DNA of 64,000 bases from positions 174,220-238,219 of IMG/VR virus record IMGVR_UViG_3300021962_000021; one strand, given 5' to 3'. Made by a program: the position numbers and the translations under genes. Below, in pieces: positions 6,106-52,877 of this stretch. Under the pieces are notes generated by a model, which was not told where the DNA came from, made no database searches, and saw only the letters and a program-made list of their open reading frames with translations. The stretch's first letter is position 1; each line of letters opens with the position of its first letter.

Positions 6106-6109
6106 ATTT

Positions 6110-7102
6110 ATGAATAAAACGGACAAGATTTTAGTTACAGGAGCAAGTGGTTTTATCGGCTCACACCTATTGAGATTATTATGGGAAAAAGGATATAGAA
6201 ACCTAAGAGCAACATCTTATAGTAGAGATTTAAAAAACGATTTCGAAGGAACATCGGAAGTTGAATTTTACAAAGGAAATTTACAAGATGCGGATTTTTG
6301 TAAAGAAGTTTCTAAAGATGTAAATGTAGTATTCCACTGCGCAGCAAACACATCAAACGCATTGGATACGAAAGAAAATCCACTATTACATGTTACTCCA
6401 AATGTGGAAATGAATGTAAATTTAATGGAACAAAGTTGGAGAAATAGTGTAAGTAAATTCTTATTCATTTCATCTAATACTTCTTATCCTGATATGGGTA
6501 GTGATTGGTGCACAGAAGATATAAATGTTCATGCAACACCTACATTTCCAATTTATGGAGCAGTTGGTAATATGAAAAGATATGGTGAATTACTTTGTCA
6601 TTTCTTCTCAAATCAAATTCATAACCCAATGCAATGTTTGATTGTTAGACCTTCAAATGCATTCGGACCAAACGACAAATTTGATTATGAAAAATGTCAT
6701 GTTACTCCTGCAAACATCAGAAAAGTAGCAGATGGCTTAAATCCAATTCCAGTGTGGGGTGATGGAACGGAAGTTAGAGATTTGTTGCATGTAGAAGATA
6801 TGGCAGATGGTTTTATCTTTGTTGCAGAAAATAATGACAAGTATGATATATTTAATGTTTGTTATGGAGAAGGATTTAGTGTAAACGAAGTATTAAGTTG
6901 GATTAAAGAAGCAGATAACAACAATAATCCAGTTGAATATGTGAATAACAAAGCACCTATGATTCCGGTTAGATTAATGTCATCTAAGAAAATAAACGCT
7001 GCAGGTTGGAAACCTAAGAGAGATTTAAAAACTGCTTTAAAAGAAACTATCGAATGGTATAAAGCAAATAAACATTTGTATAATCCAAATTCAAAACCAT
7101 AA
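6110..7102 (+). CDS. NAD-dependent epimerase/dehydratase (GDP-L-fucose synthase-like SDR)
   Basis: VTGASGFIGSHL, HCAA, FISS, RPSNAFGP, VWGDGTEVRDLLHVED. Confidence 0.9.
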   Translation: MNKTDKILVTGASGFIGSHLLRLLWEKGYRNLRATSYSRDLKNDFEGTSEVEFYKGNLQDADFCKEVSKDVNVVFHCAANTSNALDTKENPLLHVTPNVEMNVNLMEQSWRNSVSKFLFISSNTSYPDMGSDWCTEDINVHATPTFPIYGAVGNMKRYGELLCHFFSNQIHNPMQCLIVRPSNAFGPNDKFDYEKCHVTPANIRKVADGLNPIPVWGDGTEVRDLLHVEDMADGFIFVAENNDKYDIFNVCYGEGFSVNEVLSWIKEADNNNNPVEYVNNKAPMIPVRLMSSKKINAAGWKPKRDLKTALKETIEWYKANKHLYNPNSKP

Positions 7103-32738: not shown

Positions 32739-35700
32739 ATGGCAGCTATATTTACATTAAGAAAAGGTTCTACAAACGCAAGTCCTTCACTAACAGAAGC
32801 AGAATTATATTTACATTTAGGTAGTGGTTCTATTCAATTTGGTAGTGGTTCTACAAAATATAACCTATTACCATTGGATGCACCTGTTAAGGGAGATGTG
32901 ATTCTTACAGGAAATATAACAGCATCTAATGCATATTTTTCAGGAGATGTTGCAATTTCTGGAAACTTATTTTTGGGTAATAATACATCTGATAATATAA
33001 GTGCACTGGGTGTATTTACATCGGATTTAAAACCAGGAACTTCAAATACATATAATATAGGAAGCACAACCGCAGTTTGGGCAAATGTATATGCAAATAA
33101 CATTTCGGCATCTTCATTCACAGGTTCATTTAGTGGTTCAATTGGTGGAATAGATTTCAATCAATTCAGTTCTTCAGTAGATAGTAGATTAGACCAATTA
33201 GAAACCGATTCGGGTTCACAAAACACAAGAATAACAAGTTTAGAATCTAAAGCAACTACTTTACAAACATATACTGCAAGTATCAATACAAGAATTGACC
33301 AACTTGCAACGGATACAGGTTCTCAAAATACAAGAATAACAAATTTAGAAACAAAAGCAACTACACTTCAAACATATACTGCAAGTGTGGATAATAGATT
33401 GAGTAGTTTAGAAACAGATACTGGTTCTCAAAATACAAGAATAACAACTTTAGAAACAAAAGCTACAACTTTACAAACTTATACTGCAAGTGTTGATTCT
33501 AAATTCAATACAATTCAAAGTTTAACCGCATCTTTAAATTTACAAACAGCATCGTTTAATACATGGACGGGTTCGGTTTATAATAATTTTTCAGAATCAG
33601 TTGATAGTAGATTGGATAATGTTGAAAGTTATACATCATCATTAAAAAATGCAATATCTGCAAGTGGACAAGATTTGATTGTATATGGTAACTTAACTGT
33701 GCAAGGAACACAAACAACTCTTAACACTTCGGAAGTAACTATTGAAGATAAAACATTAACATTAGCAAGTGGTTCAACAAATGGTGCAGATGCGGATAAA
33801 GCTGGATTATATATAGCAGGTGCAGATGTTAGTATGAGTTGGAATAACTCAAACCAAAGAGTAGAATTAAATAAAGATTTTGCAGTAATTGGTAGTATAA
33901 GCGCATCGAGTTTCATTGGATTAAATGGTGTAAGTTTATCAAACTATTCTACATCCGTTGATAGTAGACTTGTAAGTATACAAACTAATTTACTTGCAAC
34001 TTCTGCAAGTGTAAATGGGCATATAGTAGATATTAACTCTAAAACGGGTTCATATGCAACAACCGGCTCTAATACATTCAATGGTACACAAAGAATAGTT
34101 GGTAATACATCCATAACGGGTGGATTGGATATATACTCTGCAAGTTGGGCAGAAATTCGTTTAAGAAATGGTGATATTGGAATTGATTATCATATCCAAA
34201 ATACCGCAGGTGGTAATTTTTCAATTCATAATAAAGATTTAAACGCATCAACATTCAGAATTGATTCTGGATCAACATTAAATGAAGCACATGTTCATAT
34301 TTTTGCAGATTTGTATGTAACGACGGGTAGTGTTTATGCTCAAAAATTAGTGTCAGCGGCAACTGCTTCTTTTGGAAAAATATACGCAATAGGGCCAGCA
34401 GGTGAAATTAGTGGTAGTATTAGTGGTATAGGAAATGTTTCACAATACTCTCAATCGGTAGATAGTAGATTAGATAGTTTAGAACTTTCAACTTCTTCTT
34501 TATACCAATACACTTCTTCAAATGATACAACTAATACAAATCAAAATAATAGATTAAGTATATTAGAAGAATCAACAGCAAGTTTAAATACTTTTAGTGC
34601 ATCTATAAATGGACATGTTTCGGATATTAATACCTATACGGCATCTATAAATGTACATGTTTCTGATATTAATGCATGGACTGGTTCTCAAAAACAAAAA
34701 GATACAACTTTAGAATCGGTAACCGCATCTTTAAATTTACAAACAGCATCGTTTAATATATGGACGGGTTCTATATTCCAACCATTCTCAACTTCAGTAG
34801 ATACTAGATTGGATTCTTTAGAATATACGGTAACTATATTAAGCCCTGGTGGATTGGAAGCATCTTTGTTATCCATAAACTCAGCAACACAATCATTACA
34901 ATGGTTTAGTCAATCTATTCATTTATATACCGCTAGTTTAAATGATACAATTGCAAGATTAAAAGAATCAACTGCAAGTATAAATTTAACAACTGCATCT
35001 ATAAATGGACACATTTCCGATATAAATGTTTGGAGTGGTTCTGCAAAAACTTCTATTACTAATTTAGAAACCAAAGCAACTACTCTTGAAACTTATACCG
35101 CATCTGTTAATGGACATATTGCAGATATAAATGCATATACTTCTTCCAATAATACTACTAACACAAATCAAAATAATAGATTAAGTAGATTAGAAGAATC
35201 AACTGCATCATTAAATTCTTATACGGCATCATTAAAAACTGCAATTGCTCTAAATGGAACAAATGTAACAATCAATGGTGACCTTTCAGTTTTAGGAACA
35301 ACTACACAAATTAATTCAACACAAGTTAATATTGGTGAAAATATATTAGAATTAAACTTTGGTGGTTCAGCAACAACAGCTGGTATTTACACGAGAGATG
35401 TAACAGGTGGTTCAACAACTTCGGGTTCATTACTTTGGAACGCAACTGATGATATTTGGATTGCGGGTAAAAAAGGTAGTGAAGCTAAAGTATTGACAGA
35501 TGGAATGGGAGTAATATCCGGTTCGGGTCAATTGGGAAGTTATGAAACAACGGGTAGAGGAATTATTTCATCTTCTGCTCAAATTGATACATTATTTAAT
35601 TTAGATGGAATTGTATCAAGTTCAGCACAAATAACACCATTATTACCTAATGGAGTTGTTAGTGGTTCATCGCAAGTTTCTTATTTGGGATTAACCAACA

Positions 35701-36653
35701 TACCTGCAGGAATTATTTCATCATCTGCTCAAATAGATACATTATTCAATATTGATGGTTTAGTTTCGGGTTCATCTCAAATTGATGCAACCTTAACTAC
35801 AAATTGGACAACTGGTGTTAAAACTCAATTAGACAATAATACAGTTGTATCGGGTTCATCACAAGTTTCTTATTTGGGATTAAGTAATATACCATCTGGA
35901 ATTATTTCATCATCTGCTCAAATTGATAGTATATTTAATATTGATGGATTAGTTTCAGGTTCATCTCAAATTAACTTTACAGGATTAAGTGGAATATCCG
36001 CAAATATAATTTCGGCATCTTCTGATACGGCACAAGTTGATATGATTATAACCGGGGGTTCAATATCCGCTAACTTAAAAGGTGGTGTTGTATCGGGTTC
36101 GGGTCAAATAGATGTATCTTCAACAACCGGTGATATTACATTGGGAACTAGAACATCTGGTAATTATGTTGCAACTATAACAGGAACAGCAAATCAAATA
36201 ACAGTCGCTGGTTCCGGTGTTGAAACTGCAGCAATTACACTTTCGACTCCACAAGATATCGCAACAACATCAAATGTTCAATTCGGTTCAATCGGTGTGG
36301 GAACTACTGCAAGTGGGGTAAGTGGTGAGATTAGAGCAACAGGAGATATTGTGGCATTCTATTCTTCGGATGAAAGATTAAAAGAAAACATACAACCAAT
36401 CCAAAACGCTTTATCAAAAGTTGAATCAATTAGTGGTAATACATACGATTGGAAAGAAGGATTTGAAACAATACATTCTCACACAGGAAATGACTTAGGA
36501 GTAATTGCACAAGAAGTTCAATCAGTATTACCTGAAGTAGTAACTGAAAGAGAAAGTGGATATTTAGCAGTTGATTATGTGAAATTAGTTCCTGTATTAA
36601 TTGAAGCAATTAAAGAATTATCTGCAAGAGTTAAAGAATTGGAAAATAAATAA
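32739..36653 (+). CDS. Long fibre protein with C-terminal intramolecular chaperone (peptidase S74)
   Basis: YSSDERLKENI...W...GVIAQEVQSVLPEVV...VDYVKLVPVLIEAIKEL; coiled-coil repeats. Confidence 0.85.
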   Translation: MAAIFTLRKGSTNASPSLTEAELYLHLGSGSIQFGSGSTKYNLLPLDAPVKGDVILTGNITASNAYFSGDVAISGNLFLGNNTSDNISALGVFTSDLKPGTSNTYNIGSTTAVWANVYANNISASSFTGSFSGSIGGIDFNQFSSSVDSRLDQLETDSGSQNTRITSLESKATTLQTYTASINTRIDQLATDTGSQNTRITNLETKATTLQTYTASVDNRLSSLETDTGSQNTRITTLETKATTLQTYTASVDSKFNTIQSLTASLNLQTASFNTWTGSVYNNFSESVDSRLDNVESYTSSLKNAISASGQDLIVYGNLTVQGTQTTLNTSEVTIEDKTLTLASGSTNGADADKAGLYIAGADVSMSWNNSNQRVELNKDFAVIGSISASSFIGLNGVSLSNYSTSVDSRLVSIQTNLLATSASVNGHIVDINSKTGSYATTGSNTFNGTQRIVGNTSITGGLDIYSASWAEIRLRNGDIGIDYHIQNTAGGNFSIHNKDLNASTFRIDSGSTLNEAHVHIFADLYVTTGSVYAQKLVSAATASFGKIYAIGPAGEISGSISGIGNVSQYSQSVDSRLDSLELSTSSLYQYTSSNDTTNTNQNNRLSILEESTASLNTFSASINGHVSDINTYTASINVHVSDINAWTGSQKQKDTTLESVTASLNLQTASFNIWTGSIFQPFSTSVDTRLDSLEYTVTILSPGGLEASLLSINSATQSLQWFSQSIHLYTASLNDTIARLKESTASINLTTASINGHISDINVWSGSAKTSITNLETKATTLETYTASVNGHIADINAYTSSNNTTNTNQNNRLSRLEESTASLNSYTASLKTAIALNGTNVTINGDLSVLGTTTQINSTQVNIGENILELNFGGSATTAGIYTRDVTGGSTTSGSLLWNATDDIWIAGKKGSEAKVLTDGMGVISGSGQLGSYETTGRGIISSSAQIDTLFNLDGIVSSSAQITPLLPNGVVSGSSQVSYLGLTNIPAGIISSSAQIDTLFNIDGLVSGSSQIDATLTTNWTTGVKTQLDNNTVVSGSSQVSYLGLSNIPSGIISSSAQIDSIFNIDGLVSGSSQINFTGLSGISANIISASSDTAQVDMIITGGSISANLKGGVVSGSGQIDVSSTTGDITLGTRTSGNYVATITGTANQITVAGSGVETAAITLSTPQDIATTSNVQFGSIGVGTTASGVSGEIRATGDIVAFYSSDERLKENIQPIQNALSKVESISGNTYDWKEGFETIHSHTGNDLGVIAQEVQSVLPEVVTERESGYLAVDYVKLVPVLIEAIKELSARVKELENK
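33180..33500 (+). repeat. Three tandem 105-nt (35-aa) coding repeats
   Basis: Unit L(E/A)TD(S/T)GSQNTRITxLE(S/T)KATTLQTYTAS occurs three times. Confidence 0.85.
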
Positions 36654-36709: not shown

Positions 36710-39700
36710 ATGGCACTTAAATTTAGACGTGGGACAACCGCACAAAAATCAGGTTCACTAGCATACGGAGAACCATATGTAAATACTACATTAGGGACTC
36801 TACAAATTGGAGGAGAAGCAGGTGATATAACACTTTTAATAAACTCATCCTCAGCTGGAATTTCTGGTTCATCATTGGATATTACAGGAAATGCAAAAAT
36901 AGATGGTAACCTAAGATTGGGTGGTAATATTACAATTGGTGACCAAACAACCGATACTGTTAATGTTGTAGCAAATTTAAGTTCATCTCTTATACCATCT
37001 GTAAATAACGCATTTGATTTAGGTAGTTCTACGAAAATTTGGAGAGACCTTTATTTATCAACAGGTTCAATAAAATTGGTTGATGGAAGTGGTGTGGTTG
37101 TTAATACTATTACAAACGCAAATATTGTAACAACCGATACTATTGCAAGTGGTAGTGTTACTTTAACAAATTCATTACCAACTGGAGTTGTATCAAGTTC
37201 GGCACAAGTTGTAAATATACTGAATTCTCTTAATTCATATACTGCAAGTAATGATACAACCAACTCTACTCAAAATAGTAGATTAGACCAACTTTCTACC
37301 GATAGTGGTTCTCAAAATACAAGAATAACAAATTTAGAAACAAAAGCAACTACACTTCAAACATATACTGCAAGTGTAAATGGGCATATAACCGATATAA
37401 ACACTTATACTTCTTCAAACGATACTACAAATACAACACAAAATACAAGATTAACGGCATTAGAAGCATCAGCATCTACGGCGTTATCTACAAATAATTT
37501 ACAAAGCACAAGAGTTGACCAATTGGCAGCAGCAACTGCATCGGTTAATTCATTTACATCTTCAATCAACACAACTATTAAGAGTAAATTAGATACAGAT
37601 GGTGTTGTGAGTGGTTCATCTCAAATAACTTTATCATCAACAACTGGATTTACTTCTTATAGTTCATCCGTTGATAGTAGAATATTAACTGAAAAAGGTA
37701 GAGTGGATGCAATTTTATTAGCAGCAGATGCGGATAAAGATTCATTTGCAGAAATTGTAACTTTAATCAATTCGGTAGATACTACAAATGATAACACTTT
37801 TGCATCATTTTATACAGCAAGTAATGGTAGATTAAATAATTTAGAATCTACATCAGCAAGTGTAAATGGACATGTTTCTGATATTAATACAAAAACAGGT
37901 TCTTTTGAAACTAAATTTTCAACATTACAAACCTACACTGCAAGTGTAAATGGTCACATCGCAGATATAAATGCATACACTGCATCAAACAATACAACTA
38001 ATAGTTCTCAAACTACAAGAATTGACCAATTAGCAGCAGCAACTGCATCTGTTAATTCATTTACATCTTCAATTGATACAACAATTAAAACTAAATTGAA
38101 TGTAGAAGGTGTAATTAGTGGTTCTTCACAATTAAGTGGAACTACGATATCAAATTTATCAGGTTCATTTACCGGTTCATTCAAAGGAAATGTTGCAGGT
38201 GTTGCTGATTACGCACAAACAACTGCAGTTGTAACAACAGGAGCAACAACGGATAACACCTTATATCCTATATTTTCTTCCAATCCATCACCAAATTCAT
38301 ATATAACACCTATAACTCACCCATCGGGTTCGTTTTATTATAATGGTGCGAGTAGAAAAGTTTATGCTGATACATTTGTAGGTGGAATTGAAGCGACAAA
38401 TGGTATAGTAAGTGGTTCTGCACAAATAGTGGATGTATTATCATCATTGAATTCATATACAAGTTCAAACGATACAACTAATACTTTACAATCTACAAGA
38501 ATTGACCAATTAGCAGCAGCAACTGCATCGGTTAATAGTTTCACATCATCGGAAAATACAAAAGCAGCAACATTAGCTTTATATACCGCATCCGTTGAAA
38601 CTAAATTTTCAACATTGCAAACCTATACTGCAAGTGTAAATGGTCATATTGTGGATATAAATGCATACACTGCATCAAACAATACAACCAACACAACGCA
38701 AAATGGTAGATTAAATAATTTAGAATCTACATCTGCAAGTGTAAATAGTTCAATAAATAATATTAACTCATTCACAGCTAGTAATGGTAATACTTCATTA
38801 AATTCATATACGGGTTCATTAAACGCAGCATTATCAGTAACGGGTTCTAAAATTAACTTTTTAGGAGATATAGTAGTTTGGGGAACACAATCGGTAATCA
38901 GTTCGCAAAATTTGGCAGTAGCTGATAATATGATTTATCTAAATGATGGTTCAACCGTAACTGATCCTGATTTGGGTATAGCAGGTAACTACAATGATGG
39001 TGTATATAGACATACTGGTATATTTAGTGATGCAAGTGATGGACATGCATGGAAAGTGTTTAAGGCATATACTCCTGAACCATCTGGAACAATAGATACT
39101 ACACATGGTTCATTCGCATTGGCAGATTTTAAAGCAGGAGCATTTACAGGTACATCATTTAGTGGACAAATATTGGCAACCAATGGTGTAGTGAGTGGTT
39201 CATCTCAAGTAGATGCAACAGCAACTACTAACTGGTCTACTGGTATTAAAACCCAATTAAATACTAATACCGTTGTATCGGGTTCATCTCAAATAAATTT
39301 AGGTTCCGCAGCAGGAAACATCGCATTATCAACCCAAACAACAGGTGATTATGTTGCAAGTTTAGTTGCAGGAACAAATATTACTCTTTCCAATAATAGT
39401 GGAGAGGGAGCAACCCCAACAATTGGTTTAACAAATAATTCCATTACAATTGCAGGACAATCTACCGCTTTAGGTAGTTCAGTAACGGCAGAAACTATTA
39501 GAACTGCAATAGGAACAGTTGTAACGGGTTCAGGACAAATATCAATTACTGGAGTAAGTGGATATGATGCAAATAAATATGTTGACCACACAACGGTAAC
39601 AATGACTGCCGGAAGTGGTTTAATTGGTGGTGGAACAATCGCAGAAACTAGAACATTCTCAGTTGATTCTGGCTCAATGTTACCATATTACTCTTCTTCT

Positions 39701-40645
39701 GTATTTAGCAGAATTAGTGGTGATTTAGCAATAAACTCAGTTGGTTTTGCAACAATACAACCAAATTCAGTTGCATTGGGTTCGGATACAACGGGTGATT
39801 ATGTTGCAAGTTTAGTTGCAGGAACAAACATTACATTATCAAATAATGCCGGTGAAGGAGCAACTCCTACAATTGGATTGACTAATAACGCAATTACGAT
39901 TGCAGGACAATCTACTTCATTAGGAGGAACTATAACTGCTGAAACTATTAGAACCGCAATTGGCACTGTTGTAACAGGTTCATCACAAATTAATTTCACA
40001 CAATTAAGTGGAATTAGTAATGGTATAATTTCATCTTCTGCACAAATTGATGCATTATTTAATTTGGATGGTATTGTTTCGGGTTCATCTCAAATTGATG
40101 TATCATCTACTACGGGTGATATTGCATTAGGAACTAGAACATCTGGTAACTATGTAGCAACAATAACTGCAGGAACGGGCGTATCAACAACGGGCGCAAC
40201 AACAGGTGAAGGAATTGCACATACAATTTCTATCGGACAATCGGTAGCAACATCGGCATCTCCAACTTTCGCAGGTTTAACAATCAACGGTGCTATCACA
40301 GCAACGGGCGATATTACAGCATATTACTCTTCGGATAAAAGATATAAGAACAATATTCAACCAATTACAGATGCGTTAGCAAAAGTAAGAACATTGAATG
40401 GTGTAACTTGGGAATGGAATGATGATGTGAGTGATGTAACCAAAGCAGCACCTCAAACGGGTTTAATAGCACAAGAAGTTCAAGCGATATTACCTGAAGT
40501 TGTTAAAGAGAAAGAAGATGGATACTTAGGTTTGGATTACGCTAAGATGATGGGTCTAATGGTAGAGGCAATCAAAGAACAACAATTACAAATAGAAAAA
40601 CTACAATTAGAAGTAGTAGATTTAAAAAGACAAAAAGGGTTATAA
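36710..40645 (+). CDS. Second long fibre protein with S74 intramolecular chaperone
   Basis: MALKFRRG...LAYGEP anchor; YSSDKRYKNNI...GLIAQEVQAILPEVV...LDYAKMMGLMVEAIKEQQ. Confidence 0.85.
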   Translation: MALKFRRGTTAQKSGSLAYGEPYVNTTLGTLQIGGEAGDITLLINSSSAGISGSSLDITGNAKIDGNLRLGGNITIGDQTTDTVNVVANLSSSLIPSVNNAFDLGSSTKIWRDLYLSTGSIKLVDGSGVVVNTITNANIVTTDTIASGSVTLTNSLPTGVVSSSAQVVNILNSLNSYTASNDTTNSTQNSRLDQLSTDSGSQNTRITNLETKATTLQTYTASVNGHITDINTYTSSNDTTNTTQNTRLTALEASASTALSTNNLQSTRVDQLAAATASVNSFTSSINTTIKSKLDTDGVVSGSSQITLSSTTGFTSYSSSVDSRILTEKGRVDAILLAADADKDSFAEIVTLINSVDTTNDNTFASFYTASNGRLNNLESTSASVNGHVSDINTKTGSFETKFSTLQTYTASVNGHIADINAYTASNNTTNSSQTTRIDQLAAATASVNSFTSSIDTTIKTKLNVEGVISGSSQLSGTTISNLSGSFTGSFKGNVAGVADYAQTTAVVTTGATTDNTLYPIFSSNPSPNSYITPITHPSGSFYYNGASRKVYADTFVGGIEATNGIVSGSAQIVDVLSSLNSYTSSNDTTNTLQSTRIDQLAAATASVNSFTSSENTKAATLALYTASVETKFSTLQTYTASVNGHIVDINAYTASNNTTNTTQNGRLNNLESTSASVNSSINNINSFTASNGNTSLNSYTGSLNAALSVTGSKINFLGDIVVWGTQSVISSQNLAVADNMIYLNDGSTVTDPDLGIAGNYNDGVYRHTGIFSDASDGHAWKVFKAYTPEPSGTIDTTHGSFALADFKAGAFTGTSFSGQILATNGVVSGSSQVDATATTNWSTGIKTQLNTNTVVSGSSQINLGSAAGNIALSTQTTGDYVASLVAGTNITLSNNSGEGATPTIGLTNNSITIAGQSTALGSSVTAETIRTAIGTVVTGSGQISITGVSGYDANKYVDHTTVTMTAGSGLIGGGTIAETRTFSVDSGSMLPYYSSSVFSRISGDLAINSVGFATIQPNSVALGSDTTGDYVASLVAGTNITLSNNAGEGATPTIGLTNNAITIAGQSTSLGGTITAETIRTAIGTVVTGSSQINFTQLSGISNGIISSSAQIDALFNLDGIVSGSSQIDVSSTTGDIALGTRTSGNYVATITAGTGVSTTGATTGEGIAHTISIGQSVATSASPTFAGLTINGAITATGDITAYYSSDKRYKNNIQPITDALAKVRTLNGVTWEWNDDVSDVTKAAPQTGLIAQEVQAILPEVVKEKEDGYLGLDYAKMMGLMVEAIKEQQLQIEKLQLEVVDLKRQKGL
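39342..39990 (+). repeat. Internal duplication of a ~65-aa module, copies starting near 39342 and 39792
   Basis: TTGDYVASLVAGTNITLSNN.GEGATPTIGLTNN.ITIAGQST.LG...TAETIRTAIGTVVTGS occurs twice. Confidence 0.85.
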
Positions 40646-40649
40646 TTTA

Positions 40650-41648
40650 ATGTATGATGTTTATTACACCACCGCTGGAGGCCCTTGGTTCAACAGCGGT
40701 GCTGATATATGGGTAACGAAATGGATAGAAGAAGTGGCACCACATTTAGAGGTTAAACCACTTCTACTTTTCCATAGAAAGAAACCTGATAATTACGAAG
40801 AATTTCCAATCAACATTGACCATATTTGGGAAACAAATGAATTGGAAATTGATAAAATATTAAAGAGTGCAAGAAAAATTCACATACTGCACGGACATTA
40901 TACACCAACTACCGCAATTCATAATAATTTAGATAAAATAGATTCAATTGTTTTCCATAATTTGACAAAAGTATCAATGGTGGGTCAAATGAATAAAGAT
41001 GAATATTTGCATTGGTATGGTAATTGGGAATGGGAAACGGAATTAATAAATAAAATAAAAAATAAAATTTGGGTAGGATTATATAATTTTCCATATAAAA
41101 CGGATAATTTACATCAAATACCAAATTATTATGAATTTATTGAAAACAAAGAACTATTAAATTCTAACAAAATAGGATTTGCAGCAAGAGCAGAAGGTAG
41201 AAAAAATGTAGAATATTTGGATGAATTAGAATCTATTATTTTTACAAATTCAGAAACCTTTAACAAATATTATAGAAAAAAATATGGATACGGATTCGGA
41301 AAATCAAAAATTTATAAATTTGATTACAAACATAAGGAAAGGTTCTACGGACTTGATTGGGGAATATCTCATTCTTGCTTTGAATTTGAACCATTTGGAT
41401 ACGGAATTTTTGAAGCAGTGGATTGGGGAAAGCTTCCGATATTACATGAAAAGTGGCACGTTCCACTTGATTATAAATACAAAGCGACTGACAAGGAATC
41501 ATTTAAGCAGACCTACCAAACGATTTGTGAGGATGATTACGAAACCCGTAAAAAAGAATTTGAAAAACTTAAAAGTTGGATGATACAACACTTTTCAAAT
41601 AAAGAAGTGTGGAAAGAAAAACTTTTAGATATTTATAATGGATTATAA
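40650..41648 (+). CDS. Glycosyltransferase (GT-B fold, GT4-like)
   Basis: SGADIW N-terminal loop, FAARAEGRKN, EPFGYGIFEAVDWGKLPI (E-x7-E signature). Confidence 0.75.
   Translation: MYDVYYTTAGGPWFNSGADIWVTKWIEEVAPHLEVKPLLLFHRKKPDNYEEFPINIDHIWETNELEIDKILKSARKIHILHGHYTPTTAIHNNLDKIDSIVFHNLTKVSMVGQMNKDEYLHWYGNWEWETELINKIKNKIWVGLYNFPYKTDNLHQIPNYYEFIENKELLNSNKIGFAARAEGRKNVEYLDELESIIFTNSETFNKYYRKKYGYGFGKSKIYKFDYKHKERFYGLDWGISHSCFEFEPFGYGIFEAVDWGKLPILHEKWHVPLDYKYKATDKESFKQTYQTICEDDYETRKKEFEKLKSWMIQHFSNKEVWKEKLLDIYNGL
41630..41637 (+). promoter_or_regulatory. Putative late promoter motif TATTTATA
   Basis: Exact motif in the 3' end of the glycosyltransferase gene, before 41659. Confidence 0.5.
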
Positions 41649-41658
41649 TCATTAATAG

Positions 41659-43419
41659 ATGGCAAGAACAAACTTATCATTAGGTAACTTATATAGAGCA
41701 GTGAGTGGTTCGGCTAGACCGGGAGCAGTTTCATTAGGTGGACTTGCTGGTGGTAGTGCGGGTAGTAATGTAAATTTACTATCTTTTGCAACAAATGAAA
41801 TAACGGTGACTCCACCAACTTATACTTATATAGTAGAAAGTACAACGGAAAATGCACAATTTTCATTTACACAAACCGGTTCTTATTTTTACAATAAAGT
41901 TCAACAACAATTAGCAAACTTTACTTGTTCATTTAATAACGCAAATTTCTCAACAGGTTCAAATACATTCGGAACAGGTCCAACGATAGTTCCAATTACT
42001 CCTGCAGGTATAAATCAATCATCATACTCGGAGGCTTCAGCTGTTTTAACAATGAAGTATCAAGATGGTTATAATATAAATGCAGCTAATTATGGAACTG
42101 TAACAACCAAAACTTTATATGCGGTTGATGTCTATAATACGATTAACCAACCTGATTTCTGTTTGTTATTTGGAACCAAAGTAACAAAAGCAAACGGAAC
42201 GGAAGTTAATGTTGAAGATTTATCTGTTGGTGATACAATTAAAGCATGGGTTCCTATGGGATTACCTGATGAATCATTACCAACGGAAACGGAAGAAGTT
42301 GAATGGAGATTTCATATGTTAGAAACAGCAACGGGTTCATATGAAGAAGTGGTGATATCTGATATTGTATTTAACTTTGCAAGTGGATATTATCAAATTA
42401 ACGATGGATTAATAAAAGCAACAGGAACTCACCCAATTTATGTTTGGGATGCTGAAATTGAAAAATATAGATTTAAAAATATGGAAGATGTTCTACCTGG
42501 AGATTTGGTAGTAACATTTGATGAGATATCAGGATTGACAGAGGTGGAAGTTTATGATATTGATACTATAATAGAAGATGTTGAAATTGTAACAATTAAT
42601 GTTGAAAACGCCGATGTTTATTTGGCAAATAAAACAATTTCTCATAATAAAGGAACAATTACTCAACCATTTATTCCATCATCTGGATTAAGAATGTATA
42701 TGGACCCATCAAAAGCATATTCATTCCCATCACAAACACTTCCATCAACAGGCACACCAACAACGGATTGGTTAGATTTGAGTGGATATAATACCGGTGT
42801 AAGACCTTCTGGAGTTGCAAACTCGGCAGGATATAGTGGAACTTCACCAGCATATAATGCCGGAGCAACTAGAATTGATAAATATTTTACATTGGATGGT
42901 AGTGGAACTTTTTGGTTTAAAGATAGAAACTCAAATATCAATGGTGGTATTACTCAATTTGATGTTACGGCGATGACATTTGTTGCATGGGTTAGACAAA
43001 CTGCAAACCAAGGTGCAACTTATGGTGGATTGTTCTCAAAAGAAGGTGCGGATAGAGATTACAATTTTTATTTATATAGTAGTGGTGCATCTGCATGGGA
43101 TGGTTTCCATTTTGCAACTGCAAGAGGAACGGTTTCAAATTCAGTTCAAACATTTTCTGCACCAGCATTGAATACATGGCATATGGTGGCAGTTACAATA
43201 TCAGCAGCAGCTGGTATAACATATTATTTAAATGGTAGTAGTGTAGGAACGGGCACAGTTTCGGCATTTAACGCAACATCTACTTATGATATTAAATTGG
43301 GTAGAGCTGATAATTATGCAAAATGTCAATTAGGACCTACTTTATTTTATAATAGAGTATTATCCGCAAGTGAGATTTCACAAGTATACAATTATTTCCA
43401 ACCAACATATAGACCGTAA
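41659..43419 (+). CDS. Virion-associated protein with central Hint (intein-like) domain and C-terminal LamG/ConA-like domain
   Basis: CLLFGTKV...VEDLSVGD...ATGTHP...ISHN Hint motifs; T..AWV...WHMVAVT...YLNG...YNRVLSASEI LamG motifs. Confidence 0.8.
   Translation: MARTNLSLGNLYRAVSGSARPGAVSLGGLAGGSAGSNVNLLSFATNEITVTPPTYTYIVESTTENAQFSFTQTGSYFYNKVQQQLANFTCSFNNANFSTGSNTFGTGPTIVPITPAGINQSSYSEASAVLTMKYQDGYNINAANYGTVTTKTLYAVDVYNTINQPDFCLLFGTKVTKANGTEVNVEDLSVGDTIKAWVPMGLPDESLPTETEEVEWRFHMLETATGSYEEVVISDIVFNFASGYYQINDGLIKATGTHPIYVWDAEIEKYRFKNMEDVLPGDLVVTFDEISGLTEVEVYDIDTIIEDVEIVTINVENADVYLANKTISHNKGTITQPFIPSSGLRMYMDPSKAYSFPSQTLPSTGTPTTDWLDLSGYNTGVRPSGVANSAGYSGTSPAYNAGATRIDKYFTLDGSGTFWFKDRNSNINGGITQFDVTAMTFVAWVRQTANQGATYGGLFSKEGADRDYNFYLYSSGASAWDGFHFATARGTVSNSVQTFSAPALNTWHMVAVTISAAAGITYYLNGSSVGTGTVSAFNATSTYDIKLGRADNYAKCQLGPTLFYNRVLSASEISQVYNYFQPTYRP
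42160..42648 (+). other. Hint domain (163 aa, no endonuclease), BIL-like
   Basis: Cys1 at 42160, block B TGTH, terminal His-Asn at 42643-42648 followed by Lys. Confidence 0.8.
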
Positions 43420-45779: not shown

Positions 45780-46268
45780 ATGCCAGAAATATTAGAGTTT
45801 GATAAAATGTTCTATAAGAATTTTGAACCAAAGTTAGGTAACAGATTCATTATGGAAATCAATGGTATCGAATCATACATCATCAAAACTGCAAGTAGAC
45901 CAACTTTCACTTCAGAGGTAGTAGAATTAGACCACATCAATGTAAAGAGAAAGATTAAAGGTAAATCAACATGGGATGATGTGAATATTACCCTTTATGA
46001 CCCAATTGTTCCTTCTGGAGCACAGCAAGTTATGGAGTGGATTAGAACTTCACATGAGTCATTAACAGGTAGAGATGGATACGCAGCTTTCTATAAGAAA
46101 GATATTACATTCTATCTATTAGGACCAGTTGGTGATAAAGTTGAACAATGGACTTTAAAAGGTGCATTCATCACTTCAGCAAACTTCGGTGAGTTGGATT
46201 GGGCATCAAATGATCCTGTTTCAATTGAATTAACATTGGCATACGATTACGCAGTATTAGAATACTAA
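45780..46268 (+). CDS. gp19: Tail tube protein (gp19-like)
   Basis: Follows the sheath gene; GKSTWDDVNITLYD, YKKDI, WTLKGAF...GELDW, LTLAYDY. Confidence 0.9.
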   Translation: MPEILEFDKMFYKNFEPKLGNRFIMEINGIESYIIKTASRPTFTSEVVELDHINVKRKIKGKSTWDDVNITLYDPIVPSGAQQVMEWIRTSHESLTGRDGYAAFYKKDITFYLLGPVGDKVEQWTLKGAFITSANFGELDWASNDPVSIELTLAYDYAVLEY

Positions 46269-46365: not shown

Positions 46366-47181
46366 ATGGAACAAAACATTGAACAACAAGTTACAAGAGG
46401 ATTGGGACAACCGGTTACAACACAAACTAAAACTTACGATTTCCCAACAGAAATTATAGCATTACCATCAAAAGGACTTTGCTACCCTGAAAATTCACCA
46501 TTAGCAAAAGGTGAAGTAACAATTAAGTTATTAACTGCAAAAGAAGAAGATATTCTTACTTCTCCAAATTTAATTAAAAGAAACCAAGTAATTGAAAAAT
46601 TATTAGAATCTGTTTTAATTGAGCCAGGAGTAAGAGTTGATGACCTTTTATTGGGAGATAAGAATGCAATTCTTATTGCAACTAGATTGTTGGCATATGG
46701 TCCAGAATATAAAATTAAAGTAACGGATAAAGAATACGGAGAAGAAGTAGAGTGGTCAGTAGACCTTTCAAAAATTCAAATTAAAGAAGTTGATTATTCT
46801 TTATTGAATAGAAGAAATGAATTTACTTATACATTACCACATAGTAAAACTCAAATAAAATTTAGGTTATTAACACATGGTGATGAAGCAGCAATTACTA
46901 AAGATGTAGAAGCAGCTGAAAAAATTACTAAGCAAAGTAATGAAATCACAGCAAGATATAGACGAGTTATCACCGAAGTAGATGGTAACAGAGATATGGG
47001 ATATATTAGTAATTTTGTAACTAATAAATTGCAAGCTAGAGATTCAAAAGAATTAAGAAAATATATCGCATCTGTAACACCTGATTTGGATTTTAAATTT
47101 GAATACACATCACCTTACACGGGCGAAACGGAGGCGCTTCCTATACCATTTGGGAGTGACTTTTTTTATCCTACCGAGTAA
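46366..47181 (+). CDS. Tail/baseplate-hub assembly chaperone (gp26-like)
   Basis: LPSKG..Y, TAKEEDIL, L..GD.NAIL...R...YG, ends FF; lies between tube and tape measure. Confidence 0.75.
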   Translation: MEQNIEQQVTRGLGQPVTTQTKTYDFPTEIIALPSKGLCYPENSPLAKGEVTIKLLTAKEEDILTSPNLIKRNQVIEKLLESVLIEPGVRVDDLLLGDKNAILIATRLLAYGPEYKIKVTDKEYGEEVEWSVDLSKIQIKEVDYSLLNRRNEFTYTLPHSKTQIKFRLLTHGDEAAITKDVEAAEKITKQSNEITARYRRVITEVDGNRDMGYISNFVTNKLQARDSKELRKYIASVTPDLDFKFEYTSPYTGETEALPIPFGSDFFYPTE

Positions 47182-47751: not shown

Positions 47752-50700
47752 ATGGCATCAGCAGAAGAAAAAAAACTACAAGCATTACAGAAGTCCAGAC
47801 AGTTAATGTTGGATAATTTATCTTTAATGAAGCAGACACAAGCTGCTCATAAAGCTGAATATGATGCTGCTGTCGAATATACAAAACAATGGGAATCATA
47901 TTACTCTATAATGAGTGATAATGAAAAGAAAGCATTTGATGCTAGAAAGAAAATGATAGCGGATTATGATAAAGCCGCAAAAGGTATTCAATCAGTAAAT
48001 AAAGGACTTGAAGAAAACGCAAAACAATCCAAAAGAGCAACTCAAGAAGTTCAAAAACAAAAGAAAGCAATTGAGGAATTAAGAAAAGAAACCAAAGCAA
48101 TGGTTAGTGACCAATCTCAGTTAGTTAAGGGATTGGAAAAAATGAACGACGCTTTTAAGGGTACTAGTAAAACGCAGCGTGTAATAAATACCGGATTTGC
48201 TCAACTTGAAGTTTCATTATCAAATGTAAATAAAGCAATTGGTGATGGAAAAAAATTACATCAAGATGAATTAAAAGAAATTCAAAAATACAAACAAGCT
48301 TATAATGATTATTCTACATCAATAGCAGATGTGCAAAGACAAGTTGCAGAAAAAAACATATCAGAAGAACAAGCTATTGAATTGATAAAAAAGCAAAGAG
48401 AAGCATTCAATGATGTATCTAAGGGATTAAAATTAACAACTGAAGAAGGTAAAAAAGTTGCAGCAGAAATTCAGGGAATGGTTTCACATGCCGATGAATT
48501 TGGAAAAAAATTAGAAGGGGTAAATAAAAAGGCTGCAAACATAAAATCAGGTTTTGAAGAAATAAAAGGACAAATTGGAGGAATGCTACCAATGGGTAAG
48601 GAACTATTGGATGTATTTAGTAAATTTGGTAAAGTTGGATTTGCAGGAGCACTTGCAGCATTAGGCGCAGCAGCTGGTAAATTTTTAAACGAAAGTGGTT
48701 TACTTAAAAAAGCATTACCTGGTATTAAAGACCGTTTGGATATTGAACAAGAGGGTAAGAGAGCAACATTTAATGAAGTTACTCAACCTTTACAAAGACT
48801 AGAATTTCAAACTGATGAAAAGTTTAAGAAAAAGTCATTTGCATTAGACCAACAATATGAAGCCAAAAGACATGGCATAACAATGGCTAATAAACAAAAA
48901 GAGTCAGCAATGACCTTTAAGAGTGAGGCTAGTATGGCATATTTTGGTAAAGCACTTCCTAATCTTGGATTTGCAGCAAATGAATTACAAAATGCAGGAA
49001 TTAGTGCGGATAATATTGCAGGAGCATCGGTGACCATTGCATCTCAAATGGGTGTGGGTGGAAAACAATCAGCAATATTGGGTGCTGAAATGGCAACATT
49101 TGCTAAATTTGCAGGAATAGGTGCAGAAGAAGCAACCGGTATATCCGAATCATTCAAATTAATGGATGGTGTGACTGCAGATACGGCAGCAAATATGATG
49201 CAAGGTGTTAAGGCAATGGCAGAACAATTAGACCTTAACCCAGGAGCAGTAATGAAAGAAATGGCTAATGCAAGTGAAATTGCATTAGAAATGAATATAA
49301 ATAGTGGAAAGGCATTAGCAAAGCAGGTATCATACGCATCTTCATTGGGCGTATCGTTCTCAAAGATAGCTAAAGCAGGACAAAGTATGGTATTGAACTA
49401 TAAGGATAGTATCAAAAAAGAAATGCAACTATCCGCTTTATTGGGTAAGCAAGTTGACCTTTCCGAAGTAAGAGCTAAATTTGCAGAAGGTGATACAACC
49501 GGTGCAATGCAGGCATTACAAGCACAAGGTTTAGACCCGGCTCAAATGGATATGTTCCAAAAGCAAGCATTGCAAGAGGCAACGGGTATGGATTTAGGTG
49601 AACTAACAAAGATTGGTAAAGGAGGTGGAAAATCAGCCGAAGCTTTGGATTCTGCTGCAAATAAAATAGATAAAGCAAGTATACATGCTGCAAATAAACA
49701 CCTTTTAGCAGCAGAAACTGCAAGACAGATATCTTTGGAAAATCAACAATTTGCATTACAACAGGCGGCAGCAGCAGCAAATTTCCAATTGCAATTAGAA
49801 CAAGATAAAGAACAATTTGAATTAGACCAGCAAAAAGCAAAGGAACAATTTGAAAACGATTTATCATTCGATAGAAAAAGACAAGAAATCGAATTACAAC
49901 AAGAGTTAGCCACTTTAGGAAATACTATACTTACACAACTTATCCCTGCATTATTAGCATTTGGTGCCGGTGGTGGATTTAGTGCATTGGGAGATTTGGT
50001 TGATATGATACCAGGCAAAAAAGGTAAAAAAGGTGGAAGAAGTAGGAGTAGAACAAATACAAATAAACAAAGTTCGGCTCAAAGAAGAAACACTGCAATG
50101 CAATCAAGACCGGCGCCTGCAACAGGTGGACCTGCATCAGCAACACCTGCGGCACCACCAACAAGAGCACAACAAGTTGCACAGATGAAGGCTCAGAATC
50201 CTGGTATGACATCGCAGCAAGCATTACAACAAGTTAAAGCTGCACCCGCAGGTGGTGCACCAAGCGGACCTGCGGCAGCTGCACCAAAACCAACCGGTGG
50301 AGGTGGAGGAGGGGCAGTTCCAAAACCAGCTGCAGCACCTGCGCCAAAATTAGCAGCACCTGCGGCACCATCTGTTCCACCTGCACCAAAAATCCCTGCA
50401 GCCGCACCTATTTCAACTCCTAAAATGAGTTTTTGGGATAAATTAAATCCTAAAAAATTCTTAGGTAATGTTATAGGTAAATCTGGTGGTGTATTAAAAG
50501 TATTGGGTTCGGTGGCCGGAAAAGTAGCAGGACCATTAGGAACTGCATTGGCAGGATTTAGTATGTATAAAGACCTTTCAGCATTGGTAACAATGAATGA
50601 AGGACCTTTGCCAGATTTATATAAAAATGTGGGTGGTAGTGTTATGGGATTGGTTGGTTCAATATTGGGTGGTGCACTTGGCGGAACATTTTTAGGACCT

Positions 50701-51438
50701 ATTGGAGCAATGTTAGGTAGTACACTTGGTTCGACCGTTTTTGGTTGGTTGGGTGATTTATTTCCGGGAGTTCCAACATTTTTAGGAGAATTTTTAGTTG
50801 ATACTTTGGGGTTATTTGGTAAACCGGGTTCAGCAGTTCCACAAACTACAGCCGGTGGCGGTGGCGGAGCTGCATCTGCACCATCAGCAGCAGGAACAAC
50901 ATCAAAAGCAACGGCAATTGTGGGAACTAGTCAAGCAGTTAAAGCAGCTGCAGCACCAACCGCAGCACCTGCAGGCGGTGGTACACCTGCATCTACACCG
51001 GCGCCAGCTGGCGGCGGAGCAAAAGTAGCTAGTCCTGGAGCAACAGGTACATCAACAAAGGGTTCTGCATTAGCAGGGGGAATGACCGGTATGTTAATGG
51101 GTGTTCAACTTCAAAAAATATTCGGACCAACAAATACTAAGACAGAAGGATTTATAGACCAAGCAAAAGTTGATTCTGCAAAACAAACTGCAGCAATTAT
51201 GCTACAGACGAAAACTATTACAAATTCTAAAGGATTACCAACGCAAAATACGGCAATGCAAGAACAACTCAATGATTTGATAAAAATAATGGCTACAGCA
51301 TATGGTAATCAAAGTGGAGAAGTAACAATTATGTTAGATGGTAGAAAAGTATCTAGAACGATAAATAAAGTAAATTCGAACAATAATCTAACGGGTGGTG
51401 ATAAGGGTGATAATGGTGGTAAAGGTGGTCCTGTATAA
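47752..51438 (+). CDS. Tape measure protein
   Basis: Long Ala/Gln/Lys helical protein after tube and chaperone; Gly-rich hydrophobic segments; C-terminal IMLDGRKV. Confidence 0.85.
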   Translation: MASAEEKKLQALQKSRQLMLDNLSLMKQTQAAHKAEYDAAVEYTKQWESYYSIMSDNEKKAFDARKKMIADYDKAAKGIQSVNKGLEENAKQSKRATQEVQKQKKAIEELRKETKAMVSDQSQLVKGLEKMNDAFKGTSKTQRVINTGFAQLEVSLSNVNKAIGDGKKLHQDELKEIQKYKQAYNDYSTSIADVQRQVAEKNISEEQAIELIKKQREAFNDVSKGLKLTTEEGKKVAAEIQGMVSHADEFGKKLEGVNKKAANIKSGFEEIKGQIGGMLPMGKELLDVFSKFGKVGFAGALAALGAAAGKFLNESGLLKKALPGIKDRLDIEQEGKRATFNEVTQPLQRLEFQTDEKFKKKSFALDQQYEAKRHGITMANKQKESAMTFKSEASMAYFGKALPNLGFAANELQNAGISADNIAGASVTIASQMGVGGKQSAILGAEMATFAKFAGIGAEEATGISESFKLMDGVTADTAANMMQGVKAMAEQLDLNPGAVMKEMANASEIALEMNINSGKALAKQVSYASSLGVSFSKIAKAGQSMVLNYKDSIKKEMQLSALLGKQVDLSEVRAKFAEGDTTGAMQALQAQGLDPAQMDMFQKQALQEATGMDLGELTKIGKGGGKSAEALDSAANKIDKASIHAANKHLLAAETARQISLENQQFALQQAAAAANFQLQLEQDKEQFELDQQKAKEQFENDLSFDRKRQEIELQQELATLGNTILTQLIPALLAFGAGGGFSALGDLVDMIPGKKGKKGGRSRSRTNTNKQSSAQRRNTAMQSRPAPATGGPASATPAAPPTRAQQVAQMKAQNPGMTSQQALQQVKAAPAGGAPSGPAAAAPKPTGGGGGGAVPKPAAAPAPKLAAPAAPSVPPAPKIPAAAPISTPKMSFWDKLNPKKFLGNVIGKSGGVLKVLGSVAGKVAGPLGTALAGFSMYKDLSALVTMNEGPLPDLYKNVGGSVMGLVGSILGGALGGTFLGPIGAMLGSTLGSTVFGWLGDLFPGVPTFLGEFLVDTLGLFGKPGSAVPQTTAGGGGGAASAPSAAGTTSKATAIVGTSQAVKAAAAPTAAPAGGGTPASTPAPAGGGAKVASPGATGTSTKGSALAGGMTGMLMGVQLQKIFGPTNTKTEGFIDQAKVDSAKQTAAIMLQTKTITNSKGLPTQNTAMQEQLNDLIKIMATAYGNQSGEVTIMLDGRKVSRTINKVNSNNNLTGGDKGDNGGKGGPV

Positions 51439-51488: not shown

Positions 51489-52877
51489 ATGGCCACAATC
51501 CAAGACTTATTTAAAGAGCAAAAAAAAGACTTATACGGTTTAGCCGGAACGGTTTTGATTGAAAGTAGAGGTATAATCAATGCACCAAGAGGTGCTGCTT
51601 TACTTACTTCTTCACCGGATGCGTTGGCCGACCTTATCGGTAATCAAATAGGTGGAGCATTTGGTGGAAATCCTAATAGAGTTTCTGATACTATTTTTAG
51701 AAAACCAAAAGGTGTAAGAACAAAACCAGTAACCTTACCCGCAGTAACACAGGCATTGTTAAGGGATTCCGTTGAAGCAAATACCAAATATTATATAAAA
51801 CAATCTCCTGCACCCGATTCTATAATTGGAAAAATAAAACAAGGAGGTAGTAACCCATTAGGAGCAGCTGCAGCATTGGCAGCGGGGGCATTAAATACAT
51901 TTGGTAGTAAAAAAGGAATTAACAGATTAAAAGAAAAATTAAAATTTAAAAAAGCGGATGCAGGTAAATCTTATGGTCCACAATGGACTGCAGAAGATTT
52001 AGGAAGTTCTAAATTAAGAAACGAAGATTATATTTTTAGTAAATATGAACCCGTATATGGAACAGATTCGGTACCCAATACAGGTAAAACCAGACCAGAA
52101 GAATTAGCACAGGTAGGAATAACGGAAAGAGATATAACTAGAACATATGATACAGCAAATGATGCCATAAATTCAACTGTTATTGTTTATGATGATAAGT
52201 TGGATAATTGGAAAAAAGATAATAATAAAGCTGGAATCGTAAGTGTTACCATCAAACCATATGGTAAAGATTATAATATACTTTTACCAGGAAGTATTAG
52301 TGGGATATCAGAAGATTTTGCTAACGAAGTAAATAGTTTTAAATATGTGGGGTCACCATTCAATACATACAGATATTCGGGAATAGAAAGAAATATAAAA
52401 TTTGAATTAAAATTATATTACACAAACGAAACGGAAAAAATAACAATGATTACAAAAATTAATTCTTTAAAAGAATTAATGTTTCCATATGATGAACTTT
52501 CAACAATGACTTATGCGGATAGCAAAACTTCTCAAATTGCATTTAGTCCAAACCTTATTTATTTAACAATAGATGGTTATTATAAAAATGTATTTGGTAT
52601 TATGGATACTTTATCCGTTAATATAGATGATAATGCATCTTGGGCATTGAATGATTTCGAAGAAGATTCTAAAGACAAAGCATATCCTACGGTCGTTAAT
52701 ATTAGTTTTGGTATGAAAGTTATCGAAAATCCAACGGTTGAAACAAAAGGAAAGATAAGTAGATTTAAATATAATTTTGACGGTAACGAAATAAAAACAG
52801 CTTCAACTCTTGATTTTGAAAAAAAGAAAGAAGCAGCAAAACAATTATTGGATAATTTAAAATTATTTTATACATAA
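51489..52877 (+). CDS. Baseplate/tail-tube initiator-like protein
   Basis: Tube-fold-like C-terminal half (ISEDF...YVG....YRYSGIERNIKFEL...PNLIYLTID...W); follows the tape measure gene. Confidence 0.6.
   Translation: MATIQDLFKEQKKDLYGLAGTVLIESRGIINAPRGAALLTSSPDALADLIGNQIGGAFGGNPNRVSDTIFRKPKGVRTKPVTLPAVTQALLRDSVEANTKYYIKQSPAPDSIIGKIKQGGSNPLGAAAALAAGALNTFGSKKGINRLKEKLKFKKADAGKSYGPQWTAEDLGSSKLRNEDYIFSKYEPVYGTDSVPNTGKTRPEELAQVGITERDITRTYDTANDAINSTVIVYDDKLDNWKKDNNKAGIVSVTIKPYGKDYNILLPGSISGISEDFANEVNSFKYVGSPFNTYRYSGIERNIKFELKLYYTNETEKITMITKINSLKELMFPYDELSTMTYADSKTSQIAFSPNLIYLTIDGYYKNVFGIMDTLSVNIDDNASWALNDFEEDSKDKAYPTVVNISFGMKVIENPTVETKGKISRFKYNFDGNEIKTASTLDFEKKKEAAKQLLDNLKLFYT

Follow-up and report, generated by a model that had tools for sequence, protein, structure and literature searches.

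A bacterial intein-like Hint domain followed by lysine in a tail-region protein of an uncultured 238-kb phage

Bacterial intein-like (BIL) domains of the A type, which are said to go back to Amitai in 2003 and Dassa in 2004, combine the Hint fold with a Cys at position 1, a TxxH motif and a terminal His-Asn pair (HN), and have no Cys, Ser or Thr directly after the domain (position +1). They form a thioester at their N-terminal end and cut at the C-terminal Asn; even in the absence of a +1 nucleophile, they can also ligate their flanks, through attack of a freed amino group on the thioester (PMC4031507, PMC7664689). They lie in variable regions of non-conserved proteins of the surface or secreted type; Hedgehog and B-type BIL domains, which cut only at the N-end, have no HN (PMC7765530). 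The BIL2 domain of the Tetrahymena BUBL system passes its N-terminal flank to the epsilon-amine of a Lys, forming an isopeptide (PMC8616854). Here, we describe a Hint domain encoded in the tail region of an uncultured 238-kb phage (gene at 41659-43419). The window analyzed, 64,000 nucleotides long, is the final 64 kb of the 238,219-bp IMG/VR virus record IMGVR_UViG_3300021962_000021 (positions 174,220 to 238,219), which is rated 100% complete.

The Hint-bearing protein was divided as follows, using the sequence and structure models, whose confidence is given as the predicted local distance difference test (pLDDT); positions are those of the window.

41659-43419, + strand: whole gene, an open frame of 586 amino acids (aa) comprising N-peptide and Ig-like domain, Hint, Lys-Gly linker and LamG
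41659-41790, + strand: residues 1-44, a strongly conserved, partly helical N-peptide (MARTNLSLGNLYRAV...), candidate docking or anchor segment
41791-42159, + strand: residues 45-167, Ig-like beta-sandwich (model m5e66aadb64b3, pLDDT 87)
42160-42648, + strand: residues 168-330, BIL-type Hint autoprocessing domain of 163 aa, with no endonuclease insert
42160-42162, + strand: codon of Cys168, Hint residue 1 and predicted thioester nucleophile
42421-42432, + strand: T255-G-T-H258, the block-B TxxH motif
42613-42615, + strand: Asp319 in the block-F-like strand 'VENADVY', invariant in 121 homologues
42643-42648, + strand: His329-Asn330, the block-G terminal pair and predicted site of Asn cyclisation
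42649-42654, + strand: Lys331-Gly332 directly after the Hint, a clade-wide signature and candidate amine acceptor
42676-43416, + strand: residues ~340-586, LamG/concanavalin-A-like lectin-fold domain (Pfam match on residues 432-574)

The N-peptide, for which both structure models gave helices at residues 8-16, 26-30 and 40-43, showed many invariant columns in the homologue alignment and was conserved down to orthologues of 25% identity. The Ig-like sandwich proper spans residues 45-160, and the segment ends with F167, on which the thioester would be formed. Its structural matches were generic, the best by VIA-align being an invasin (Z 7.9), followed by other Big/filamin-type domains; a protein-atlas feature search with the N-domain returned nothing usable. 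In the AlphaFold2 model of the protein (pLDDT 86.5, alignment of 73 homologues), a low-confidence hinge was observed at residues 333-336. Pfam gave no match on the whole 586-aa protein, and the C-terminal part (residues 331-586), searched alone, matched Laminin_G_3 (PF13385; E 3.2e-14, 53.8 bits versus a cut-off of 27.6). Foldseek matched this part, modelled with a pLDDT >90, to trans-sialidase lectin domains, pentraxins and phage LamG proteins. The protein also matched the PHROG virion structural families phrog_38766 and phrog_8510. It is plausible that the N-terminal part serves as an anchor and that the LamG domain binds a carbohydrate or a surface. The order of anchor region, Hint and lectin-like domain, proposed by a first-pass annotation made from the sequence alone, was thus borne out by the Laminin_G_3 match and the models, and every detail given there for the 163-aa Hint (Cys1, TxxH, terminal His-Asn and +1 Lys) agreed with the open reading frame (ORF), the Foldseek matches, and the clade profile and invariance described below.

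Searches with the Hint sequence alone against Pfam, NCBIfam and PDB sequences gave sub-threshold matches only; in Pfam, four Hint families were touched, with values of 0.027 for Hint_2, 0.04 for Hint and 0.084 for Intein_splicing. Because these single-sequence searches stayed sub-threshold, a structural comparison and a clade profile were needed. By Foldseek, the middle domain of the model matched the Clostridium thermocellum BIL 2lwy with a template-modelling score by target (TM) of 0.85 and a root-mean-square deviation of 2.2, followed by the NpuDnaB intein 4o1r (0.78), Tetrahymena BIL2 6y75 (0.76) and the Hedgehog domain 1at0 (0.72); 6mwy was also among these Hint matches (range 0.72-0.85). 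A profile of 92 diverse Hint relatives (~29% identity), run against all solved structures, matched 49 solved Hint chains, with Tetrahymena BIL2 (E 7e-18) and the C. thermocellum BIL (2lwy, E 9e-17) at the top, whereas inteins were matched at 4e-11 or weaker and Hedgehog at about 7e-3. Among the 92 relatives, 70 matched Pfam Intein_splicing and 46 matched PF07591 (PT-HINT) at E <= 0.01. The middle domain thus belongs to the HINT superfamily, with a horseshoe-like Hint fold.

A word search found >918 homologues of the protein, the best 120 of which were aligned with the query, giving 121 sequences that were 60-99% identical. These 120 were nearly all full length (568-592 aa), five being N-terminally truncated (444-548 aa). 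Both ends of the Hint were present in all 121 sequences, and C168, T255, T257, H258, D319, S328, H329, N330, K331 and G332 were invariant; such invariance is far above chance expectation. Asp319 is the putative block-F Asp. In the alignment of the 92 more distant relatives, Cys1 and both His were invariant and Asn was at least 90% conserved. Invariant columns made up 23% of the Hint, 23% of the N-domain and 6% of LamG, and the ratio of non-synonymous to synonymous substitution rates (dN/dS), estimated on 69 coding sequences from related IMG/VR loci, was higher in the C-part (0.46) than in the N-part (0.25) or the Hint (0.29), values which are rough at a dS near 0.9. Judging from these figures, the Hint is under purifying selection and constrained like the N-domain.

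We also looked for forms of the protein that do not have the Hint, a check proposed in the first-pass annotation. None was found among the 121 word-search sequences, the complete ORFs of 80 related IMG/VR loci (every one with a 159-163-residue Hint ending in SHNKG) or 150 listed cluster representatives of the wider search described below. A word search with the N-domain, restricted to proteins of 92-292 residues, found 31 short proteins, which were fragments, mostly on contigs <2 kb, and included no genuine Hint-less form; the four that were examined reach 'DFCLLFGT' and stop just inside the Hint. Because no Hint-less form was present in the sets searched, we consider the Hint to be fixed in this family, not sporadic like a selfish intein. 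In one locus (L059:4001-5800, IMGVR_UViG_3300016467_000557), a TGA was observed at codon 323, in block G of the Hint, with the frame intact through SHNKG and LamG; it may be due to an error in sequencing, mark a site of read-through or represent a nonsense variant.

To place the Hint in a wider clade, an exhaustive phmmer search was performed with residues 1-340, which gave 294 cluster representatives at E <= 1e-3; a hidden Markov model of the Hint was applied to 150 listed representatives, and 125 domain starts and 122 domain ends were scored. Cys occupied all 125 starts and His-Asn 118 of the 122 ends. The +1 residue was Lys in 66 ends, while the other 56 included Ala (14) and Val (10); Ser or Thr occurred in 5 and Cys in 0, so that +1 was non-nucleophilic in 117/122. 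A Lys was present within +1 to +5 in 98/122 ends, versus a background of 3.6%. In 58 of the 122 ends, no more than 10 residues follow the Asn; +1 Lys was the commonest +1 residue there as well (25/58), and the retention of HN in these short-tailed forms is deduced from the totals only, at most 4 of the 122 ends being without it. Since Lys accompanies the Hint whatever comes next, even in proteins ending at 'HNK', it does not behave as a quirk of the extein. In terms of sequence, therefore, +1 Lys characterises a phage-borne Hint clade and is neither a peculiarity of this protein nor an incidental extein residue. The genomic contexts that we inspected for clade members appeared phage-like.

The module that follows the Hint varied. 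After the shared N-domain and Hint, orthologues carried LamG (~240-250 residues), an FN3/Ig-like domain (~100 residues, after 'HNKGGNSHTD') or other C-parts; in one 933-aa orthologue, the C-part consisted of FN3-like, LamG and Gly_rich_2 domains. In six representatives (P0136, P0139, P0147, P0149, P0159 and P0178), the Hint was followed by tails of 3-8 residues only. P0147 is a complete ORF (ending '...LVHNKGTF' and stop) on a 76.8-kb contig, in the order 336-aa homologue of the gene upstream of the Hint gene, N+Hint, 97-aa ORF, sheath, tube and hub. No relatives of the tail-less P0147, P0139 and P0159 were found in IMG/VR. The tail-less orthologues are nevertheless real, as judged from complete ORFs in the loci L083, L084, L087 and L088/L089 and from the recurrence of P0149, which is indexed in 157 blocks of the sequence collection. 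The C-terminal lectin, FN3 or other module is thus an exchangeable add-on, and the N-domain, Hint and Lys are the conserved unit. Release of the LamG domain, which had been put forward as the role of the Hint, cannot be its general purpose, because syntenic orthologues keep the N-domain and the HN-Lys Hint with other or near-absent C-parts.

Many proteins whose N-parts are unrelated also carry the same Hint type at their very C-terminus, where it often follows poly-Gly. Moreover, tandem arrays of up to eight Hints, joined as 'HNK-GG-C' ('LVHNK-GG-CFLAGT'), were observed in metagenomic polyproteins (P0169, P0170, P0175, P0197, P0215, P0220, P0244, P0249 and P0256; locus L085:5335-9192). In P0249, the units abut as 'HN/C', Cys1 of one unit being the +1 residue of the preceding one. 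In a phage-like operon, P0169 has as neighbours a GT9/GT2 fusion and a LamG protein of 1309 aa.

The whole protein and its 12-kb region had no match among 50,697 phage records (tblastn, megablast), in which the Hint alone gave weak matches only, to Erwinia and Dickeya jumbo phages. One of these relatives is gp110 of the Erwinia jumbo phage vB_EamM_Y3 (NC_047880.1, L002:5083-6519), the representative of phrog_38766, annotated as 'putative phage tail protein, contains intein domain'. Like our protein, it is a virion/tail protein with the same Hint type ('TTG/CIVFGS...VLVHN/TDIVAKAEKL' and stop, slashes marking the domain ends), and it lies among the tail-fibre genes of a ~260 kb phage. It differs in its collagen-like N-part, in a terminal Hint with a 10-residue tail and in its +1 Thr, with Lys at +6 and +9; the two are ~25-27% identical (tblastn E 2e-3 at best). 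The gene after gp110 begins one base past the gp110 stop. This protein of a cultivated phage offers a practical experimental model.

These results were used to weigh the possible classes of Hint. The catalytic set of a class-1 intein is present (Cys1, block-B TxxH and terminal His-Asn), and the 70 of 92 relatives that weakly match Intein_splicing would agree with a canonical selfish mini-intein that splices. However, +1 is Lys in all 121 homologues, where class-1 splicing requires Cys, Ser or Thr, and is never Cys at the 122 scored clade ends. Moreover, no intein-less alleles were found in the sets searched, there is no endonuclease, the flanks are variable and not those of a conserved enzyme site, and solved BIL domains score far better than inteins with the clade profile. 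We regard a canonical intein as extremely improbable, in line with the first-pass annotation, which had considered canonical splicing unlikely and had pointed to a likeness to bacterial intein-like domains.

With Cys1, TxxH and terminal HN, no +1 nucleophile, variable flanks and fixation in the family, the Hint fits the published description of A-type BIL domains (PMC4031507, PMC7765530, PMC7664689), at the level of sequence. Like them, it lies between variable modules of a non-enzymatic protein of the surface type, in a non-sporadic manner, although its N-domain is itself conserved. Unlike them, the clade is phage-encoded, in a conserved tail-module gene, with Lys (usually Lys-Gly) after HN; about half of its members carry the Hint at the extreme C-end (0-10-residue tails), and tandem arrays occur. 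The other classes considered were rejected: a B-type BIL, since the terminal HN is present and invariant; a Hedgehog/Hog Hint, since HN is present and LamG follows the Hint instead of a sterol-recognition region; a BUBL-type BIL, since the flanks are Ig-like and LamG and not ubiquitin-like; and a Pretoxin HINT system, since neither the protein nor the genome has a PF07591 match and the C-module is LamG. The Pretoxin HINT (PF07591) of polymorphic toxins resembles the clade in preceding an exchangeable C-module, which it is thought to release, but that module is a toxin, whereas the clade carries lectin-fold or FN3 modules and often none.

Could the Hint be silent, that is, a structural spacer in a protein incorporated unprocessed? 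The sub-threshold Pfam matches of the target sequence would be compatible with this. However, relatives of ~29% identity show no or almost no variation at Cys1, at the block-B His or in the terminal HN, a pattern typical of catalytic and not of structural constraint, and we consider a silent Hint very unlikely. By its motifs, the Hint appears catalytically intact and vertically inherited, and is presumably active.

We tentatively favour a reading in which an active, A-type-like BIL excises itself and the acyl group is captured by a Lys amine, in cis or between subunits. After folding, Cys168, aided by T255 and H258, would convert the F167-C168 peptide bond to a thioester. The amine of Lys331 would capture the acyl group, that is, the Ig-like N-part, and Asn330, aided by H329, would cyclise and break the N330-K331 bond, upon which the Hint would leave the protein. 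The epsilon amine might be used if capture precedes Asn cyclisation, and the alpha amine if it follows, within the same chain or with a neighbouring subunit. In the mature product, a covalent bond would connect the N-part with K331-LamG; separate, cleaved parts would result from a side reaction. We infer all these chemical steps, as well as the fate of the products, from the following arguments. Because the N-domain, Hint and Lys are kept while the C-module is optional, the conserved reaction would be located at the N-junction. The HN and nearby Lys in proteins with near-empty tails would be explained if the N-part were first moved onto the tail and then freed from the Hint. Cleavage at the N-junction alone is hard to reconcile with the kept HN, because Hedgehog and B-type BIL domains, which cut only at this end, have none. 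The Tetrahymena BUBL BIL2 (6tmm/6y75), which is the best solved profile match (TM 0.76), differs in that it has ubiquitin-like flanks and uses a nucleophilic Lys located within the downstream domain or on other proteins, whereas here the flanks are Ig-like and LamG and the Lys is at +1.

Several points weigh against Lys capture. BIL domains yield mainly cleaved products (PMC7664689), cleavage being dominant over ligation for type A (PMC4031507), and one review holds A-type BIL domains unable to ligate (PMC7765530). The conservation of HN might have a structural cause. Finally, 24 of the 122 clade ends have no Lys in +1 to +5, and the Lys counts are non-independent and slightly biased, as the clade was gathered with a query containing 'HNKG' and its members are related.

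Cleavage only is possible, if on the doubtful side, and nearly as likely as Lys capture. The thioester would be hydrolysed at F167-C168 and cyclisation of Asn330 would free K331-LamG, giving three separate pieces: the Ig-like N-part would have a free C-terminus, and LamG, alone or still on the Hint, would be released or bound non-covalently. In addition to the predominance of cleaved products cited above, the C-part is dispensable in orthologues, and about half of the clade Hints are located at the extreme C-end, often after poly-Gly, as at the Hedgehog Gly-Cys site. The Hedgehog domain (1at0) shares the Hint fold (TM 0.72) and the C-terminal, Gly-preceded position of many clade members (G/CF site); it uses its thioester for N-part transfer and, unlike our Hint, has no terminal His-Asn and has a sterol-recognition region. 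Cleavage only would moreover be analogous to the self-cleaving Peptidase_S74 chaperone of two neighbouring tail fibres, a device already in use in the same tail module. The genes around the Hint gene are the following.

23319-24935: major head protein
32739-36653, + strand: tail fibre of ~1300 aa with a C-terminal Peptidase_S74 self-cleaving chaperone, one of a paralogous pair
36710-40645, + strand: tail fibre of ~1300 aa with a C-terminal Peptidase_S74 self-cleaving chaperone, the second of the pair
40650-41648, + strand: 332-aa gene of no known family
41659-43419, + strand: Hint-bearing gene, 586 aa
43489-45732: tail sheath
45780-46268: gp19-type tube
46366-47181: baseplate hub

Together, these genes belong to the structural module of a large, T4-like myovirus. 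The + strand carries nearly all genes of the window, for which the standard bacterial code is sufficient, and G+C, taken over 2-kb windows, is close to 30-35% in most of them and ~26-41% overall. The + strand ORFs 47752-51438, 51489-52877 and 53192-55546 (1228, 462 and 784 aa), which are located downstream of the baseplate hub, had no PHROG family at E <= 1e-5. The Peptidase_S74 matches of the two fibres had E values of 1e-17 and 5e-19. Two self-processing domains of unrelated kinds, Peptidase_S74 and Hint, are thus present in the same tail module. The chaperone of tail fibres and endosialidases is a functional analogue of the Hint, in that it removes itself from tail proteins, but its fold and chemistry (Ser-Lys dyad) are unrelated and it is always terminal.

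What cleavage only leaves unexplained is the persistence of HN (118/122) and a flanking Lys, given that in 58 of the 122 clade ends the Asn is followed by 0-10 residues. Moreover, the conserved N-part would lose its LamG, FN3 or Gly-rich module, and it would then be hard to explain why such modules were acquired repeatedly.

Alternatively, the F167 thioester might be resolved by a nucleophile elsewhere, such as a Lys of the sheath, a fibre, the 332-aa neighbour or the tail of an adjacent subunit. Such trans-conjugation, an option already raised in the first-pass annotation, would attach or cross-link the Ig-like part covalently during assembly, in a Hedgehog- or BUBL-like manner, and the role of the domain that follows the Hint might be to choose the acceptor, much like that of the sterol-recognition region in Hedgehog. 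It is consistent with BIL2, the nearest solved relative, which attaches its N-flank to other proteins through their lysines (PMC8616854); with the position of the gene, locked between the conserved 332-aa gene and the tail sheath gene; and with the fibrous, poly-Gly or collagen-like N-parts of many clade members (Erwinia phage Y3 gp110), in which inter-chain cross-links would be useful. However, transfer to a foreign nucleophile would not require a conserved Asn330 with an adjacent K331, and we consider this explanation unlikely.

A homologue of the 332-aa gene was found directly upstream of the Hint gene in 62 of 63 related IMG/VR loci. In the deep relatives L084, L087, L088 and L090, it was kept at 36-48% identity, whereas N+Hint was only ~30% identical. 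The 332-aa gene and the N+Hint gene are thus a deeply conserved pair. The homologues in the deep relatives are located as follows.

L084:237-1247, 332-aa homologue
L087:1-1119, 332-aa homologue
L088:3886-4989, 332-aa homologue
L090:1747-2748 and 5971-6927, 332-aa homologues

The 332-aa protein contains an invariant 'EPFGY.IF..VD.GK.PI' block and had no Pfam, PHROG or PDB family (PDB searched by sequence and profile). This block ('EPFGY.IF.AVD.GK.PI') may resemble motifs of GT-B glycosyltransferases. A complex prediction of N+Hint with the 332-aa protein scored 0.32 versus 0.41 for the control, which is evidence neither way. In L088/L089:6053-11047 and L090:6965-10555, the N+Hint gene was followed by Methyltransf_24, Glyco_transf_7N/7C + Laminin_G_3 fusions and a radical-SAM gene, which suggests glycan-related chemistry near the tail module in these deep relatives.

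Within the favoured Lys capture, a more specific form, which we call isopeptide splicing, is unlikely: the N-part would move from the Cys thioester to the epsilon-amine of the conserved Lys, either within one chain or onto the adjacent chain of an oligomeric fibre, after which the Hint would be shed by Asn cyclisation. The conserved 332-aa partner protein might take part in it. If it occurs, isopeptide splicing would allow virion fibres and decorations to be linked covalently, in branched form or between subunits, by a self-contained route that needs no ATP.

BIL domains themselves, and one phage record noting an 'intein domain' in a tail protein, were already known. In our literature search, no description was found of the phage clade, the HN-Lys signature, the terminal or tandem architectures or the partner gene. 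BIL domains have been known since 2003 and their biological purpose is still largely obscure; the clade provides a large, conserved, phage-encoded set for its study, with >900 near homologues, 294 cluster representatives (E <= 1e-3) and a fixed position in the tail module. It combines a simple HN-Lys signature with natural 'experiments', namely tandem arrays and orthologues in which the C-part is a lectin, an FN3 domain or absent. If cleavage only takes place, phage tails would possess, in the Hint, a second maturation device that removes itself, unrelated to the S74 chaperone. If Lys is indeed the acceptor, it would represent a new self-catalysed protein-ligation chemistry, relevant to virion assembly and to tag-free isopeptide engineering.

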